From: Phyllobates terribilis
Lineage: Eukaryota
DNA length: 64,000 nt
Direction: 5' to 3'
Assembly (NCBI RefSeq): GCF_046119375.1
Contig: NW_027366878.1
Span: 1-64,000 of the forward strand
The position numbers and the translations under genes were made by a program. The notes under the pieces are model-generated. The model worked only from the letters and a program-made list of their open reading frames with translations. It did not search any database and was not told where the DNA came from. Each line of letters starts with the position of its first letter. Position 1 is the first letter of the stretch. Shown here one piece after another: positions 14,121 to 32,340 of the stretch.

Positions 14121-14295
14121 TGGGCCGACAAGGCAAACAGTCGCTGGAGCCGATTATAACCCACACACGGAGCCTAGCCCAAAAAACGAGCTTTGATAAG
14201 AAAAAAAAGGTGACGGGCAAGGATAACCCGACCGTTTACTTTCATCTTCCCAAGTCCCCAACTACAAATTGCAATCAGAAAAACCCTAAACCCTA
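14121..14295 (+). promoter_or_regulatory. NOP56 proximal promoter: site II motifs plus telo-boxes
   Basis: TGGGCC at 14121, AGCCCA at 14176, AAACCCTA at 14281 and 14288. This combination is established for plant ribosome-biogenesis genes. Confidence 0.7.
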
Positions 14296-20893: not shown

Positions 20894-21910
20894 ATGGCGT
20901 CCGGAGAATCCAAAAACACAAGCACAGGCTACTGCTCCGCCACCGGAATCTATCAAAACCTACACCCATCCATCCCTCTACCCCCGGAATCCGACTCCAT
21001 CTCCATTTCGGACTTCATCTTTTCCTTCTTCAGCTCCTCCTCTACAACCGTCGACGTTACCACCCACAACGCCTTCGTCGACGCCGTCACCGGCGACTTA
21101 CTCTCCTATTCCGACTTCTTCCGCCAAGTCCGCTCCCTTTCTTCCACCCTCCGCCGCGGCACCTCCATTTCCCCTCCAATCAACTCCGGCGACGTCGTTC
21201 TAATTCTCTCCCCTTCCTCCCTCAAGATACCCGTCCTCTACTTCTCCCTCTTCTCCCTCGGCGCCGTTGTCTCTCCCGCCAATCCGCTACTCTCCGCCTC
21301 CGAGCTAGCTCACATAATCGGAATCTCTAAGCCGAAAGTCGCATTCGCCGTCTCCTCCTCCTCCAGCAGACTCCCCACCTCCCTCCCAACCGTCATACTC
21401 GACTCATCAGAATTCGATTCTCTCTTACATCGCGACGTCTCGTTCGCTGAGCCGGTGGTTCTCGCACAGTCAAATCCAGCAGCGATTCTCTACTCCTCCG
21501 GCACGACAGGGAGAATCAAGGGAGTAGAGCTCACGTACCGCAACCTCATAGCGATAATTACTATCCAGTACCATACGCGCCGCATCCGCGACTCGCCGGC
21601 GGTGGGGTTGCTCGGATTGCCGCTGTTCCACGTGTTCGGATTCTCACTGGTGCTGTGTGCGGTGGCGTTGGCGGAGACGTCGGTGCTGTTGCCGAGGTTC
21701 AGCTTGGAGGGGATGCTGTCGATTGTGGAGAGGTATAAGGTGACCTACATTCCGGTTTCCCCGCCTGTAGTGGTGTTGATGGTGAAGTCGGAGCTGACGT
21801 CACAGTACGATATCCGGTCATTGGACCTAATCCGCTGCGGCGGCGCCCCACTGAGTGAGGATGTTTCTCGCCGCTTCAACGCCAAGTTCCCTTGGATCCA
21901 ATTAGTTCAG
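20894..21910 (+). pseudogene. 4-coumarate:CoA ligase-like acyl-activating enzyme, exon 1 only (339 codons)
   Basis: N-terminal GYCSATGIY, AMP-binding YSSGTTGRIKGVELT, LPLFHVFGF, CGGAPL, and a GT donor after IQLVQ. The expected next exon (GYGLTE...) was not found downstream in the window. Confidence 0.8.
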
Positions 21911-23658
21911 GTTAAACCCTAAACAAATTAACATTTCTGTTTTGGTACGTAATATTTTTTTTTCACCAAAACTTAAATCATATAGATGAACCTGCTTTGA
22001 TTGAAAAATGCAGTTTACACATTTATTTTATTAATCGTATCTTTTCTTATTATAAATATTAAAAAGCCCACTCTAAGTTATCTGATTACACATATATTGT
22101 TGGTATTTATCAGCCAAAATAGGTGAGTTCAGGATTATAAATTTATTAGTGCATGATAATGAAAGATCCTTGTTCGAACATGATTAGTAGTGGAAATAAT
22201 TTATAATAAAAAATCCATTGAAACATAGCTGGATCATGTAGCGCCTTAAAGGAATCTAATCATGGAGATATTTGATGTCAAATATTTGGTAAGTTCTTCA
22301 TTTATTTTTCTATTTTTTTATATTTGTTAATAGATTGGAAACCGCCAAGTTGTCAAGGACGACATATTTTATATCGTATATATCTCTAAATGTATTTATT
22401 AAAATTTTTTAAAAATTTGATATTATTAAAATATTTATTGAGACCAATTAAACAAGACCATTTACCATTATATTTTTGCTTTATATATTGTGAGATATTA
22501 ATAAGATTTTTTTAATCCGTGAACAATGTTAAAAAGTGTTAAAAAATAGTGAGACGATAGATAAAGCAGAGAGTAGATAAAACTAGTTTAACCCATGTGA
22601 TGTGCATGTGATTTATTCAATATTTTAATTTAAAATAAAATAATTTATATATATTACAATTTTTAAATATAAATAAATAAATAATATTAATAAAGATATA
22701 TTGAGTCTCATTGATAATAAATAAATTCTGTATATCTAATATTTTTTGTAATTGTGATTGTATGCATTAATTATTTTAGTCATTTCCTTTTTATCTTTAT
22801 TAAATATCTTTATAATAAATATAAAAGATAATGTTAAAATTTTAATAATGCTAGATTTTATTTCTATAAAATTGAAGATTATAGTTCCTAATAAAAATAA
22901 GAATATTAGGAAAAATGATAATTTTCTAAATTATTGTTTCTTTTATTAAATAAGAATATCCCAGTCCCAGTCATATAATAATAAGAGAAATTTTTATAAT
23001 TTCTGTTACATGTCTGTCAAATCGGATGATATGTGACTATATTAAAAAGTACTCACTTTAACACGTGTAAAAAGCTGTTCAGAATTAATAAAAAATGATA
23101 TTTAACAAAACTAATGAGAGCCGACATATATGATTGTTTTTCATATTGATCTGATATTATATAGACATATTTCTTTTCTTTTCTCTATTAGCTTCAACTC
23201 TTACACCAAGTTGAGTACTTACTTGGTAGTGCTACTTAGAGATCAACTTGAAACCAACTTAAACATATATGATTGCGAATTGTTAAACTGAGAATGGTAT
23301 AAAGTATATTGAAATGCCTTGATAATTACTCCCTCTGTCCCGAAAAGTTTGAATAATTTGAGCAAAAGTATACAATTTAAGGTGTATTTAATGAGGAGAG
23401 AGGTATAGAAATGTGGGGGATTAAATTAATCTCAGCCAATCAAATTACAACATTGAATTTTCTGTAGCCAATGAGAAATCAGTATAATGGTGCCTAGGAT
23501 AACCAACATGGCATTAAATTGTTCTTACAACTTTACCCCTGTGTACTTATATCATCTTCAACAATCCATATTCCCTCTACCTTAACTGTCATTGTAAGTG
23601 AAAAAACAGAGAATATTTAGAGTGAAAACATAGCATTAGGGGGACTTTTTATGGAGGT

Positions 23659-25256
23659 ATGGCTTCAGCATTTTTAGACTTAAATGAGCTGCCAATAAGT
23701 GATGAAGAATACAGTTTATTACAGCATACAACTGGGAGTGGGGACCAACCAACAGAAGCTGTGGCAAACTCATCTGAACAGAATAATGAAGGCAACCATA
23801 AAACACAACAATTGCATCATCAACCAAACTCCAGGCTAAACAACAAGCAACGTATGCAGGTATTGAACACTATTCTCTCAAAATCTCAGGGGGGAAGTTA
23901 TCACATGGTGCAATAAAGCAAATATCAGAAGAATTAAATCTGTCAAAAAGAGTAATTGGAAGGATCTGGGCAACAGCTAAGCAACAACAAGCAGAGGGAC
24001 AGAGTTTCAATGTGAACAACAAGTTCAAAAACTGTGGGAGAAAACGAATCCAAGTTTCTCAAGAAGACATTATGAGTTTAAGCATGGGGGACAGAACATG
24101 CCTGAGGGATCTAGCAAGCAAGTTAGCAATTTCAAAGAGCACATGTCACAGAATGACCAAGGCGGGAGTCATAAAGCCACACACAAATTCCCTACATCCA
24201 GGCCTATCACCGGAGCACAAATTAACAAGACTGAGGTGGGTGCTCAGCTTGTTGCGGGGCAAAACATTACAAGAAAAGAGTCAGTACTACCCTATGTATG
24301 ACTTCGTCCACTTGGATGAGAAGTGGTTCTATCTCACAAAAAAGAGCACCAGAGTCTACCTAGCACAAAATGAGAAAGGCAAGTATAGAGCAGCCAGTTC
24401 GAGCAAATTCATCCCTAAGGTAATGTTTACAGCTTGCGTTGCTAGACCTAGGTTCAATGCACAGGGGGAATGCATATTTGATGGGAAGATTGGAATCTTT
24501 CCATTCACATACAAAGAGCCAGCCAAAAGGAGTTCAAAGAACAGAAGCAAGGGGACAGTTGTAACAAAGCTAGTGGACAGAGTCAACCAGAAAGTAACTA
24601 GAGCTATGCTAATTGAACAAATTCTACCAGCCATTAGAGCAAAGTGGCCTACTGATGGGATTCACAGAACAATTTTCATCCAACAAGACAATGCAAGGGC
24701 ACATATCACTCAGTCAGACAAGGAATGGCAAAACGTTTTTGTCCAAGGAGATTTCACTTTCATCCTAATTCAACAACCAGCAAACAGCCCAGACTTGAAC
24801 ATCTTAGACCTAGGTTTCTTTAGAAGCATTCAGTCCCTAATGCATAAAAAGATGCCTAAGGATGTCGATCACATGCTAGAATGTGTAACTGATGCATTTT
24901 ATGAGCTAGACCCCCTAACACTAGGCAATGTTTGGATGTCATTGCAAATGGTTATGAATGAGATACTCAAATGCTAAGGGGGCAATGGGTATGACATGCC
25001 ACACATCAGCAAGAAGAGGCTTGGATTAGAGGGGAACAAGCCAACAGAATTGATGGCACCTACTTGGGCTATAGTAGAAGCATGGAATGCAGTGAATGCA
25101 GATGCAAGTGCAGCGGGGACATCAAATACAAATGAGTCAATGAATGCACATGCAGCTAGTACGTCTAATGCAAATGCAAACAGGAACATAAACAGTCAAG
25201 AAGAAGAAGAAGAGTTGCTAGATGATGAGTTACTTGATGATGACCATGAACTATAG
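23659..25256 (+). pseudogene. DD39D mariner transposase with one frameshift and one in-frame stop
   Basis: Motifs HLDEKWF, IQQDNARAH, PANSPDLNILDLGFF, with 39 residues between the second and third Asp. Frame change at the G6 run 23889-23894; TAA at 24975-24977 followed in frame by GGNGYDMPH. Confidence 0.92.
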
Positions 25257-26719
25257 ATGCTTAGCTTAGATTATGCTTATGAATGCAATGTAATGAATGT
25301 CAACACTGAGATGAAATATCATAACCACTTGTCAAGTTATGATACTCATCTCATTGTATTTTGTTCCTATATGAACCTATTAATGTCTAGAAAGTGCAAA
25401 AACATATTCTCAGTGTCCCCAAATGAATCATTCCTCTGGCCCTAATCATACCCTAACCACGCCCAAAATGCCGCCTGAGTCATAATGACTGGTATCATAT
25501 TGGGAGGTTAGACCATAATTGTTGCTCAACAGAACCACAGCTCATTCTTAAAAGGGTGTCATCATTGAATAAAAAAGAAAATTTTAATCTCATAAATCTC
25601 CTAAAGTCCATCATTGATTTAGATCTATCAGTTGCCTAACTTCCCCAATACCATCCTTAGTCGTATTGACTGGTTGCATAAGGGAAGGTAGGCAATTGAA
25701 TATAAAAGAAAGAGGTCTAAATCTCAGTTCATAGAGATATCATCATTGATCATGCATGAATACAGCTACATGTTTTCCTAAAATTGTTCATACATCTCGG
25801 GACACAGGCAGTAAATAGGACATGGTCATGCTAATTCACAAGGTTGTATGCAACAGAACATCTCAAGGGGACATTTAAGCTTGAATAGATAAGGAAGGCA
25901 AAATGCAACTCATAAAAAGGATCATGCAAGACAACAGACAATGGGGATCAAGCACGCAAACAAGCAACTCATACTAGGGACCACTAAGCTTCAACACATA
26001 GGCAAGCAATAGGCAACTGATACTAGGGGACATTCAGAGCTTAGGCAACAGATAACTAGCACAAAAGTTAGCATGGGCAACCAGTTGTGCCCTTGCAGAA
26101 TCAGTTATAGCACAAAAAATGGTAAGAGCAACCAGTTGTGCACCTACCACGACCAATTTATCCGATACAGACCATTAGAAAGTAAAATTTACATGCAACA
26201 ACACAGGGGGACTAATCAAAATACCCAAAATACGTTGAAGGGTTAAAGACTTAGCTACTGTACGCTTGAATCATCATCATCACTGATGATGATGATTTCC
26301 TTGAAGCCTGGTGGGGGACCACTCCTCGGTTGAGTAGGCTTTGGCAGAGAGGGTGGGGGGACAACCCTCTTCTTCTTCTTTGTTGGCTGCTCCACCTCCA
26401 CCGAGGTCTCAGGTGAGACGTGGTTACCAATTCGGCCGTCACGATGACTGCACGAGTAGCTGTGTTTGCCCTTGCACGTGCCAGCTATCCAATCGCATCT
26501 CGGCTCCCGTAGTATTGGGAGCAGACATCACTGGCGCTGGGCTGCTTATCCTTGACCTTCTCCTGTGCGCGCCGCTCATCAGAGGTTGTCCACGAGCAGT
26601 CATACGGGCCTGAGACATGGCTTCCTGTGACCAACACAAACACAAAACTATTATAAGAACAACACAAATAACACAAAGAAACACCAATGGAGACTCAGAG
26701 ATGAATGTCAATATAAGGC

Positions 26720-27132
26720 AACCATGTGGGAGATTGACATTCATCCCTTCTCATGATCAATGGGGACTCAGAGATGAATGCCAACCTCCCAACATATCAT
26801 GACAAACCGTAAGCAACCAATCAAGGGACAGAGCAACCAATCAAGGGACAGAGCAACCAAGCAAGGGACAGAGCAACCAAGCCAAGTGTTAACAATCCAT
26901 GTGGGAGATTGACATTCATCCCTCAACATGAGCAATGGGGTCTCAGAGATGAATGTCAACATCCCAACATATCACGACAAACCGTAAGCAACCATGCAAG
27001 GGACAGAGCAACCATGCAAGGGACAGAGCAACCAAGCAAGGGACAGAGCAACCAATCAAGGGACAGAGCAACCAAGCAAGAGACAGAGCAACCAAGCAAG
27101 GGACAGAGCAACCAAGCCAAGTGTTAACAATC
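26720..27132. repeat. Hierarchical tandem repeat: duplicated block containing 20-bp arrays
   Basis: Unit GCAACCA(A/T)(T/G)CAAGGGACAGA, about 3 copies at 26813-26880 and 6 at 26988-27107. Each array is preceded by CATGTGGGAGATTGACATTCATCCC...CAGAGATGAATG and followed by CCAAGTGTTAACAATCC. Confidence 0.93.
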
Positions 27133-28979
27133 CAAGATAGTGAAAGATCACAATGTAGGGGAAAGGACAGTAAATCATGCAAAAGACATACACATGCAAC
27201 TCATCCAGTATTTAACAAAGCAAGGAATAGAGCGATCGACATCGATCTATCAACAATCAAGGGAAAATCGAGTGATCACACAACATGAATAACAAATGCA
27301 ACCCAGCCAGGGTGTTTAACAAAGCAAGTTTTGCAGAGATCGACACCGATCTGGTAACAATCAAGGGGAACGACAGCAATCACACAACCCAATTACACAT
27401 GCAAAACAGCCAGGGCTTTTGACAAATCAAGACACAAACAGATCGCCATCGATCTAGCCAGAATGAAGGGGAAACGAACGACAGCAATCACACAACAAAT
27501 AATACGCATGCAATCCTGCGAGGGCAATGTAGCAAATCAAGACACATGGAGATTGACAGCAGCAATAAAGGGGTTCGACATGAAAGAACAACAAGGTAAT
27601 CGATCCGATCTTGAACTCAAATTTGAACTGCAAACACTCAAGATCGGTTTAAATCACCCAAATCAAGCCAAAACACCGATTTCACAATCAGTACCAATAT
27701 TGGGGACGAGAAACAGAGCACCGTGAAAGAAGTTCAAAGAAATTAACATAAACAGAGCAAGATTTTTGGGGATATCATCGAACACAATTCCCAAAGGGTA
27801 AGATCGAGATCGGATTCAACCTTCATCTCAGGATCTAGTTCAATCACCCACAAGCTCCAACAAAAAAGCACCCAAATCAACCGCAGCAAAATACAGAACT
27901 GGGGACGATTTTAAGGACCCAAATCAAGCATAAAAACTACCCAAATCAAGCGCATCAAAATACAGTATTGGGGACGATTTTAATCACAAAAATCAAATAT
28001 AAAAAGCAGTTTTCAAGTTCAAGATCGTGATCAAATGCGACCACCGAGAGCCAGATGAAGATCGAGGATCAAGAACAAGATCAAGATCATCGATCAAGGG
28101 GAAGATCTGGATCAGATATCGGAGGCCCAAGAAAAAATTTTGATCAACACACATAAAAAGAGCTAATCCGGGGACGAGAAAGAGGTAGAAGAAAGGATCA
28201 GACCAAGATCCATGACAAGAGAGGCGGGGATCAAGCAACGAGAGCGGCGGTGTAGGGAGTGAATTAGGGTTTCGGAGGGGGAGAGAGTAGAATAAGAGAG
28301 TTCTAGATAGTGAGGGAGTGAAGAGTGGGAGAGATCAGAATAAGAGAGGGGTAGGGATAGATTTAGGGTTTCGGTGGGGAGGGTTTTTGGGCTGGGTTTG
28401 GGTTTGGGTTTGGGTTGGGTTTGGGTTGGGTTGGGTTAGGGAATGGGTTAGAGTAGGATTAGATTGAATGTGGGCTTTTGGGGTAGGTTTTTGTTTTTCT
28501 TTTCAGCCCAATTAATCTATGTGTAAAAATAACTAGTGTTTCTTTACAAAAAATTTTAATTTTAAACCTACAATTAATTTTAAATTGGATTTTTCAAATG
28601 TAATTAGTGAAGTTAAGTATAGTTCATGAATATAAATTCTGTTGAAATTTGAAGATGAAATGGTTTTGGTGGGAGAAGTAGTTGGAATATATGGGTAGTT
28701 GGGTCCGATTTGATAGTTAGAGAGAGAAATAAATAAAGTGAAAAGTGATGATGAGTATGAATAAAATATGTAAAGAAATAGAGTTATAGGGGTATTAAGG
28801 GGAGAAAGAGTATGTACAAAAGAGGAAATTGTTCAAATTCAAGGGGACAACCGAAATGAAAATTGTCCAAACAAAATGGGACGGAGGAAGTATATATTAA
28901 AATTAAGATTAGATAGATGTTCTTTGAAGTACATATTAAATATCAAAGATTAAATGAACCTGATCACACAAATAAACCA

Positions 28980-30147: not shown

Positions 30148-31497
30148 TTATTTGTCAATTCCCTTCAAGTTATTGTCCATAACGACCCTTTCATGTATTT
30201 CTGGAACCAAATCTGCCTTCTGAAACTTCTTATATATATCAGTCGCATAGTACTTCCTTGTCCTCACCACTAGAATCAACGATATAAACATGGCTATGGC
30301 CGTCGCTGCCGTTATAATGAAAAAAGCTGGCTTAAAACACTGAACTCCATCACAATTCAACTCCTCCCCCTCTTTCCTCTCCAACCCTAAAACCTCCATC
30401 TGTCTTAGCGCCTCCTTATCATACAGTCCGCCTGTTACCCTCACATTTAAGATGTAACCCCCAACAGGGCTCGCCAATGGCCCAACATTGAACAATGTAG
30501 AATAGTATTTGAGTCCGAAGATTTCAGAGATTATGGATAACAAAAGGGGCCATTGGGCCCCGTAGCTAAATCCGATGATAACCGATGCAACATAGATCCC
30601 GTTCGTTGGCCCAAAAGCGATTAGAAGGTGGCCAACACACGATAGGAGCAGAATAATCGTCATCATCAATGGCCTAGGGATCTTGTACTTGGTTAGAAAG
30701 TACTCAGAGAGGACTCCCATTACTACTCGACCAAGATAATTCCATATGCTCACTAGGGATACGAATGTCGTTATACTCTTGGCTGGGTACCCAAGAGACT
30801 TCCCTATCTGGCCCAAGTTATCAATAGCGGTCAAAGTTCCACCTAACCCACAAGTCATAATGATAAACAGTATGATCATGTCGATACTAAAGAGTGCTTG
30901 TAAGATAGTGTGGTCTTCTCCTCTCTGTGGTGGTCTGAACATGTTTTGATACCATTTATCCACTTCCCTCCCATTCTGCTCAAGGGTGGTATATTTGGTT
31001 GTCATGACATCGATCTGAGACTCATTGTTGGCATCCATGTTGGATTCTTGTTGATATAGTTTAGCCTTCCATAGTGCAATCTCTTGTTTGTAGACAATGT
31101 AGAGAGGCAGGCAGATGAGGAAGATGACGACGACCATGCTTCCAATGTATTCGTTATGTGAAAATGTGATTCGGGTTTCAAGTAGAATCATGATAAAGAG
31201 AAAGGATGCAAGGCCAAGAGACATGTAGAGAAGCTGGTAGAAGACGTTGACCTCTTTAGGGTTAGAGGCAGTTTTGATGACGCGGATGGAGGCGATGAAG
31301 ATGAGACAGATACCTGTTGGGAGGAAGCCGATGAAGAGGATCAGAGCTTTGGGATTTTGGAAAAAAATGGCCCGATAGAGTTGAGTTATGATGGCACCGC
31401 TTAAACCAACGAAGCCCTTTAATACGCCTAAGATTACGCCTCTTCCCTCTGGAAAGTTTATCACCAATGTCACCAATGCTGCTGTGTTTGCAAAGGC
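30148..31497 (-). CDS. Nodulin-like / NFD4-type major facilitator superfamily transporter, terminal exon only (449 codons plus stop)
   Basis: CAG acceptor then AFANTAALVTLVINFPEGRGVILGVLKGFVGLSGAI, RGEDHTILQALFSIDM, GGTLTAIDNLGQIG, FVSLVSIWNYLGRV, SEIFGLKYYSTLFN. Frame uninterrupted. The N-terminal nodulin-like exon was not found in the window. Confidence 0.85.
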   Translation of the reverse strand, partial: AFANTAALVTLVINFPEGRGVILGVLKGFVGLSGAIITQLYRAIFFQNPKALILFIGFLPTGICLIFIASIRVIKTASNPKEVNVFYQLLYMSLGLASFLFIMILLETRITFSHNEYIGSMVVVIFLICLPLYIVYKQEIALWKAKLYQQESNMDANNESQIDVMTTKYTTLEQNGREVDKWYQNMFRPPQRGEDHTILQALFSIDMIILFIIMTCGLGGTLTAIDNLGQIGKSLGYPAKSITTFVSLVSIWNYLGRVVMGVLSEYFLTKYKIPRPLMMTIILLLSCVGHLLIAFGPTNGIYVASVIIGFSYGAQWPLLLSIISEIFGLKYYSTLFNVGPLASPVGGYILNVRVTGGLYDKEALRQMEVLGLERKEGEELNCDGVQCFKPAFFIITAATAIAMFISLILVVRTRKYYATDIYKKFQKADLVPEIHERVVMDNNLKGIDK

Positions 31498-32340
31498 CTG
31501 CGTGAAGCAAAATTGCGAAACTAAAATCCAATTAACATATTTATAGACGTTATATGAACTTATAATTTTTGATGTCATAGTAATTTAAGCAAATTCTTTA
31601 TTGAAACAATCATCAAGCGGCAGTGACATTTGATATTGGAAAGAGGGATTTAAGTCATTTAACCTTGTGTCCCAATATTATGACTAATTTCAAGCTAGAA
31701 TAAGTAATCTATCTCTCTTCTATAATTTATATAAATCAGTTTTCCTATGTAATTAATATACTTCTGTGTTAAATTGTTAGCCTAAATTGAGTTGGAATTG
31801 TGTACTTAATGCACAGTAATGTATACCTAGTAACGATTCGGATCAACTCTATTATCCTTTATTGACATGTAAGCACAGTATCTACTCATTTTCCATATCA
31901 TTATCTCCCTCGATTAATTTAATGATTTTAACTCTCTGGCACCCCAACAAATTTCTTTGCAAACCCCTACGTCTTTTTTTACTTGAACAGATTCAGATTT
32001 AGTACTAACACTAATAATATAAATGATAAATAATTCGGCGGTCTAAAAGTTCTCAGACGCCTACAATGTCCATTAATCTCCTGACGAGCTACACCATGCA
32101 TAAATTGTAGAGGATCCGAAATCCTAGATCTACAATGCCAAGAGCCGGTTCCAGTTTGATTGAAATGTTTCCTGCTTGCTCACATTCAGGAAGATAAATA
32201 ACCGATCAGAATCACCGGTCAGAGCTCTTCCTCTGAACTGTTGTTTAAGGGAAACTAGGTCTTGTCAATGTTCCGGGCTATAATGTTAAGCAATTTCTTT
32301 TATTATCTCTAATCATGCGTTTAGAATATAACGATAGTGA

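Follow-up and report, generated by a model that had tools for sequence, protein, structure and literature searches.

Several cut-and-paste superfamilies other than the mariners possess accessory genes, as exemplified by ORF1 of PIF/Harbinger, TnpA of CACTA, mudrB of MuDR and VANC of VANDAL. The question raised by the locus described here is whether a plant mariner has come to possess one as well. The locus lies in the first 64,000 nucleotides (nt) of contig NW_027366878.1, from an assembly labelled Phyllobates terribilis (GCF_046119375.1), and this whole stretch is referred to below as the window. It contains an element with a DD39D mariner transposase that spans positions 23329-28890. An earlier note on the sequence proposed that the strand opposite to the transposase holds a second, convergent transcription unit, whose product would combine a Cys/His cluster, a nuclear localisation signal (NLS) and a SUMO-interacting motif (SIM). 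One half of that proposal stands, in that a gene-like unit does lie between the mobile ends of a DD39D mariner, but the other half, the accessory protein gene, lacks support. Evidence for such a gene is absent, and the protein is unsupported because its frame is part of a cargo, has no domain or relative, gives a low-confidence structural model, is of a length within chance and has its motifs encoded by repeats. The composite is probably a Pack-type plant mariner-like element in which the short frame is a non-functional passenger.

Ends of the element and origin of the extension

The features that define the element are given in their order along the window.

23327-23328 and 23329-23359, plus strand: TA target-site duplicate and left terminal inverted repeat, which starts CTCCCTCTGTCCC
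23659-25256, plus strand: DD39D mariner transposase gene, broken in the window copy
25781-25811, minus strand: vestigial original right end, its core mutated to CTGCCTG, with TA at 25812-25813
25812-28890, minus strand: 3.08-kb extension, the cargo, with the gene-like unit
28860-28890, minus strand: outer terminal inverted repeat forming the right end, which starts CTTCCTCCGTCCC, with TA at 28891-28892

The element is delimited by Stowaway-type ends with TA on both sides. Termini opening CTCCCTCC, namely CTCCCTCTGTCCC at 23329 on the plus strand and CTTCCTCCGTCCC at 28890 on the minus strand, gave two matches in the window where 0.04 were expected. The TA duplication, the CTCCCTCC termini and the DD39D transposase by which plant mariner-like elements are recognised are all present. 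The two working ends are identical at only 22 of 31 positions and, owing to the extension, the mobile unit has a length of 5.56 kb.

The transposase has 1,343 relatives at E <= 1e-10, several of which are named mariner or Tc1-like transposase, and the best of them are from Beta vulgaris (73% identity) and spinach (72%). Pfam gave weak matches only, to DDE_3 and HTH_Tnp_Tc3_2. The catalytic triad is DDD with 39 residues between the second and third Asp, as counted on the translation, the third D (in LDLGFF) standing 40 residues past the D of QQDNA. In the window copy the gene is broken twice, by a frameshift in the G-run at 23886-23891 and by an in-frame TAA at 24975-24977, and the alignment to four relatives continues straight across this stop codon. 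An extra G at 23886-23891 that restores the frame was found in a minority of family contigs (depth 91/466 and 42/585 in two runs), and because the frame-keeping base is in the minority most family copies may descend from a frameshifted, non-autonomous founder. A metagenome scan with the transposase returned one 1.2-kb contig, which was 66% identical and too short to reveal any cargo.

A further, vestigial end lies within the element. A BLAST search with the left 300 nt against the window gave an inverted match at 25773-25808. On the minus strand 25781-25811 reads CTGCCTGTGTCCC, then an inner motif in common with the left end (...GTATGAACAATTT), and the alignment with the left end runs across ~42 nt, TA included. 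This inner end scores 22 of the 26 specified positions of the 31-nt end consensus, compared with 24 for each of the two working ends, and the remaining 58 kb contain a single other site that reaches 17/26. It matches the left end at 25/31 positions, as against 22/31 for the outer right end, and is decayed at two positions of its core. The original mariner is thus 23329-25811, a complete, single-gene element of 2.48 kb, which agrees with the description of mariners as single-gene elements (PMC4423477). The remaining 3.08 kb, 25812-28890, form an extension that terminates in an end belonging to another, related element. The gene-like unit had been placed inside the terminal inverted repeats, which is true of the outer ends but not of the vestigial inner right end, and because the unit is outside the original right end of the element it is acquired cargo.

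At the outer right end a degenerate second copy of the end motif (28826-28856, minus strand, ...TTGTCCCCTTGAATTTGAACAATTT) was seen three bases inside the terminal inverted repeat, a direct-repeat layout that the left end does not have. The right end was also considered as a whole Stowaway miniature inverted-repeat transposable element, and this was ruled out because no inverted partner was found nearby, within 28450-28900.

The arrangement recalls the Pack-type fusion model, which is said to originate with Catoni et al. (2019). According to that model the outer ends of two adjacent insertions mobilise both of them, and the DNA that separates them, once the inner ends have been mutated or deleted, and Pack-Mariner elements have been reported in rice and maize (Gisby & Catoni 2022, PMC8903248). 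The model fits the window element because a mutated inner end and its TA are still visible and the outer ends enclose extra DNA. Events would have started with a complete 2.48-kb DD39D mariner adjoining another element of a related family. The mariner's own right end would have decayed, its core changing from CTCCCTC to CTGCCTG, the transposase would then have used the left end together with the right end of the neighbour, at 28890, and the intervening 3.08 kb would thereafter have been mobilised and amplified within the element. This is the order of events that we infer for the end switch.

The composite is present well beyond this locus. About 1,090 contigs from each of two DNA runs with different organism labels covered 23329-28890 at identities ranging from <90% to >99%, data that speak of presence and diversity only, and neither of copy number nor of a ranking of conservation among parts. 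Summed contig depth dropped from hundreds to <1 past 28912. Under a third organism label pieces of both the transposase and the extension were present. The whole composite, extension included, is multi-copy under three organism labels, and the gene-like unit is part of a multi-copy family, not a private accident of the locus. No second copy of the element was found within the window. Contig depth along the element was tried as a gauge of conservation and dropped, since depth cannot rank the parts of a stretch.

Likenesses to the Pack-TYPE elements, including the Pack-Mariner elements of rice and maize (PMC8903248), are the Stowaway/mariner ends, the TA duplication and the enclosure of extra, non-transposase DNA, together with the route of acquisition, in which outer ends are mobilised after mutation of an inner end, here the one at 25781-25811. 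There are also clear differences. Pack-TYPE elements are non-autonomous by definition, whereas the window element keeps a whole, if broken, transposase gene; they carry identifiable host gene fragments, whereas the cargo here is without an identifiable parent and is rich in end-core motifs; and those with mariner ends are mostly low-copy, whereas this one is multi-copy. The element therefore works like a Pack-TYPE element without being a strict member of that group. Gene capture of the mariner type is known mainly from small, low-copy, non-autonomous elements. Here a transposase-bearing mariner would have been enlarged by taking the end of a neighbour, its own former end remaining recognisable, and would have multiplied afterwards together with a cargo that bears a promoter and faces the transposase. 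This makes the element a clear, datable example of the fusion model.

Gene-like layout and repeats of the extension

On its minus strand the extension reads like a small plant gene, in which promoter motifs and a leader precede an interval filled with repeats, a GC-rich island and a stop codon. The features behind this putative layout are listed in the direction in which it would be transcribed, and all are on the minus strand.

28265-28476: promoter-like zone
28471-28476 and 28388-28393: site II-like AGCCCA motifs
28386-28449: degenerate AACCC repeats, then a CT-rich leader
28364-28371 and 28265-28272: telo-boxes AAACCCTA
28204/28203 (within 28202-28213): candidate phase-1 splice donor G/GT, a sequence reading
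27859-28005: 69-nt repeats with CGTCCCCA motifs, in the intron-like interval
27190-27496: 104-nt repeats, in the intron-like interval
26722-27117: 175-nt tandem unit holding 20-nt arrays
26626-26625: candidate splice acceptor AG, a sequence reading, with a T/G-rich tract before it
26622-26488 (within 26624-26488): upstream frame of the exon-like island, 45 residues, one base off the 90-codon frame
26527-26255: 90-codon open frame plus TAG, from the translation

Most of this layout had been described in the earlier note, and as a description it was accurate. The telo-boxes, AGCCCA motifs, AACCC repeats and CT-rich leader of the promoter zone are where they had been placed, tandem repeats of 175, 20, 104 and 69 nt fill the interval across 26722-28005, and the AG of the CACAG acceptor at 26625 is present at 26626-26625. 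Site II motifs upstream of telo-boxes in the 5' leader are a signature of plant RNA polymerase II promoters of ribosome biogenesis, and this signature has been proposed for locating cryptic promoters (PMC3022908). Across the window there are 10 telo-boxes of the form AAACCCTA against 2.6 expected. The CT-rich leader is without an ATG, the first one being at 28213-28211, and the candidate donor that follows is compatible in phase with the acceptor in the upstream frame, for which the chance expectation is one in three. The context of the acceptor is tcacag/GAAGCC.

The extension is also packed with the core of the transposon ends. The pentamer GTCCC occurs 21 times on its minus strand and not once on its plus strand. 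Block shuffles averaged 2.5 occurrences and never exceeded 9, and the density of 6.8 per kb compares with 0.2 per kb per strand elsewhere in the window. Eight copies are inside the 20-nt tandem unit, as CTCTGTCCC, the 69-nt repeats contain others in the form CGTCCCCA, still others read TGTCCCC and lie downstream of the 90-codon frame, and two are inside that frame and encode its two Pro runs. Because they are packed with oriented GTCCC motifs, the intron-like interval and the 3' region look like transposon DNA and resemble subterminal repeats, not host DNA. The full 20-nt units (26812-27117) all carry CTCTGTCCC, which is identical to positions 5-13 of the left end, and it is possible, judging from this identity, that the array is a minisatellite derived from the end.

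Cooperative binding to subterminal repeats is known for a plant pogo-like transposase, and Lemi1/Emigrant resembles the window element in having many oriented copies of a short, end-shared motif in its interior (PMC1636448). The oriented GTCCC copies would most simply be subterminal repeats of this sort, which may bind the transposase. Unlike the motifs of Lemi1/Emigrant, however, they are spread over 3 kb and include tandem arrays, and binding by the transposase is here presumptive.

This content bears on the possibility that the cargo is the outcome of the plain capture of a host gene. The extension would then hold three parts of a small, lineage-specific orphan gene, namely its promoter, 5' intron and last exon, carried as an inert passenger, and the parent gene would still be present in single copy at another site of the plant genome. 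The gene-like layout and the GC-rich island would be explained, and the site between two transposon ends fits the Pack-type model. Such a capture is nevertheless unlikely, as no homologue was found in any annotated plant, and what would be the intron is, together with the 3' region, full of oriented end-core motifs and tandem repeats, like the DNA of a transposon.

The minus-strand reading frame

The 90-codon frame (26527-26255) translates exactly as had been quoted, plus a TAG, and the upstream frame (26622-26488) does so too. It is also correct that one added base would join them, and this base could be placed anywhere between 26488 and 26527. In the window copy the frame is split by the frameshift. 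An alternative ATG, at 26618 just past the acceptor, starts a third frame 59 codons long, so either this frame or the upstream one might be the one read.

The length of the frame is within chance. There are 10 stop-free runs of at least 80 codons in the 3.08-kb extension, counting both strands, and four of the six frames of the GC-rich island are open for at least 55 codons. When the island (26255-26625) was shuffled, 40% of shuffles reached at least 90 open codons and 6.5% reached at least 120. The codon-position composition of the three minus-strand frames singled out no frame.

The motifs that had been taken to indicate a nuclear, SUMO-binding protein are present in the translation but are both encoded by trinucleotide repeats. 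KKKK is specified by (AAG)4, and the SIM-type pattern IIIISDDDD, a hydrophobic core followed by a Ser/acidic run, by (ATC)4-AGT-(GAT)4, which is a perfect palindrome. The two Pro runs each reproduce the GTCCCC motif that pervades the extension. The profile of the CCCH zinc finger (PF00642: three Cys and one His with canonical spacing) gave no match to either piece at E <= 1, and at 26450-26452 all contigs that cover the site have Gly in place of the Cys proposed as a ligand. Among the four best-supported differences in the frame between the window copy and its relatives, which are known from short contigs only, one is silent (26297) and the others change Gln to Leu (26331), Cys to Gly (26452) and Ile to Leu (26488).

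Pfam searches with five pieces from the minus and plus strands, the 90-codon and upstream pieces included, gave no match. A word search of 5.8 billion clusters with the 90-residue piece found nothing. No relative appeared in a full HMMER search of 1.84 billion representatives, which gave two matches only, to a multihaem repeat protein and to a repeat protein; both were considered as relatives and rejected as spurious on inspection. No match to the peptide or to an orthologous frame was found among the annotated proteins of Beta, spinach, carrot, celery and Rumex, and a scan of metagenome contigs with the peptide found nothing. A single-sequence AlphaFold2 model was of low confidence, with a mean predicted local distance difference test score (pLDDT) of 58.9, a predicted template modelling score (pTM) of 0.21 and two short strands. 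In the ESM Atlas the recognition value was 1396, below the mark of 2300 reached by most real families, and no usable match was returned.

With regard to expression, no run on record as RNA matched the stretch, although these runs are too few to show silence, and in the single run presumed to be RNA the sole match, at 28400-28437, was telomere-like. An Rfam search of the element, in which small nucleolar RNAs and microRNAs were sought in the 'intron', gave no known RNA family and matches at chance level only.

These results are difficult to reconcile with a true accessory gene. Such a gene would be transcribed from the telo-box/site II promoter and spliced to 26624, and in intact copies would give a nuclear protein of ~125 residues, predicted to combine a CCCH-like Cys/His cluster with a basic NLS, a Pro-rich linker and, at the C-terminus, a SIM. 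Its role might be, for example, in chromatin targeting or anti-silencing, and the window copy would be a frameshifted, dead one. The gene model is coherent and phase-compatible, and the topology of the promoter motifs is that described for ribosome biogenesis promoters (PMC3022908). The unit has moreover been kept in a multi-copy family under three organism labels, one contig of which has an extra base that could repair the frame. Even so, we regard the accessory gene as very doubtful. The unit is outside the original mariner, its frame has neither relatives nor domains, a confident fold or good recognition by a language model, its length is within chance and its motifs come from simple repeats and GTCCCC. 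The proposed ligand Cys is Gly in all contigs at 26452, and three of the four best-supported in-frame differences (26331, 26452 and 26488, but not 26297) alter the residue. There is no matching RNA run, and the annotated proteins of the related mariners of Beta, spinach, carrot and celery gave no match to the peptide. It is quite improbable that intact copies encode a small nuclear protein which aids the element and whose expression is driven by a captured promoter like those of ribosome-biogenesis genes. If they did, no accessory gene would have been described in a plant mariner before, and this one would have been observed shortly after end fusion had brought it in. A functional frame would show how a transposon gains a second gene.

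The promoter-type cluster faces the transposase, the exon-like island ends ~1 kb from the transposase stop codon and no coding signal was found, all of which would suit a non-coding convergent unit, in which a captured promoter drives minus-strand RNA toward or into the 3' end of the transposase and the resulting antisense or double-stranded RNA tunes or silences the family, the frame being incidental; but no run on record as RNA matched the stretch and no known Rfam family was found, and this reading, drawn from motifs, is improbable too.

The favoured reading remains that of a Pack-type composite with a passenger frame, and several observations weigh against it. The gene model is coherent, with site II motifs upstream of telo-boxes, an ATG and a phase-1 GT that fits the acceptor, and the GC content of the exon-like island is 56% compared with ~42% around it. 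One family contig has 250 letters on 249 positions (26282-26530), that is, one base more than the window copy, and this base could sit at the frame-repair point or elsewhere, e.g. in the G6 run at 26352-26357. The inner left end of the neighbouring element was not found. Nor was a parent gene, capture being read from structure alone. On balance the short frame would most likely be a passenger, either a captured exon that has since decayed or an open reading frame formed in repeat-derived DNA of high GC content, and the frame itself would be non-coding. On present evidence the cargo is an ordinary passenger and does not represent a new kind of system.

Related elements and genomic surroundings

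In its TA duplication, CTCCCTC-type ends and DD39D transposase with an N-terminal helix-turn-helix, the element is similar to the plant mariners Soymar1, Osmar5, Vulmar1 (Beta vulgaris) and Ppmar1/2. It differs from them in being 5.56 kb long by virtue of its extension, in having ends that are identical at 22/31 positions and in the second end-like copy inside its right end. The likeness to the accessory genes of other superfamilies would be that of a second transcription unit inside the ends, convergent as mudrB is with mudrA. Those genes are, however, conserved both among the members of a family and across related families, and their expression and function have been demonstrated, whereas the frame in the window is without a relative and is broken. 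The element provides a natural case for asking if cargo of this kind is transcribed, and whether transposition is promoted or impeded by arrays of end-core motifs.

The gene next to the element (30151-31578, minus strand) encodes a nodulin-like major facilitator superfamily protein of the NFD4 type, which has 100% identity with a protein that carries the label of a frog, Phyllobates terribilis. All of its other relatives are from plants, with 80% identity in Rumex salicifolius and ~60% in other Caryophyllales. Judged by these similarities the window is plant DNA, probably from a relative of the Polygonaceae, and looks like a contaminant contig in a frog-labelled assembly. Because of this origin no close copy of the family is to be found in annotated protein sets.

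Upstream of the element, at 21000-21900 on the plus strand, an open, GC-rich stretch resembles an exon from a gene of the AMP-binding (4-coumarate-CoA ligase-like) kind, and the mariner sits in an AT-rich spacer between this AMP-binding-like gene and the NFD4-like gene. Elsewhere in the window two overlapping AAACCCTA telo-boxes were seen at 14281-14295 on the plus strand, near site II-like motifs at 14121-14181, and the cluster at 14121-14295 may serve as promoter to a host gene for the translation apparatus.

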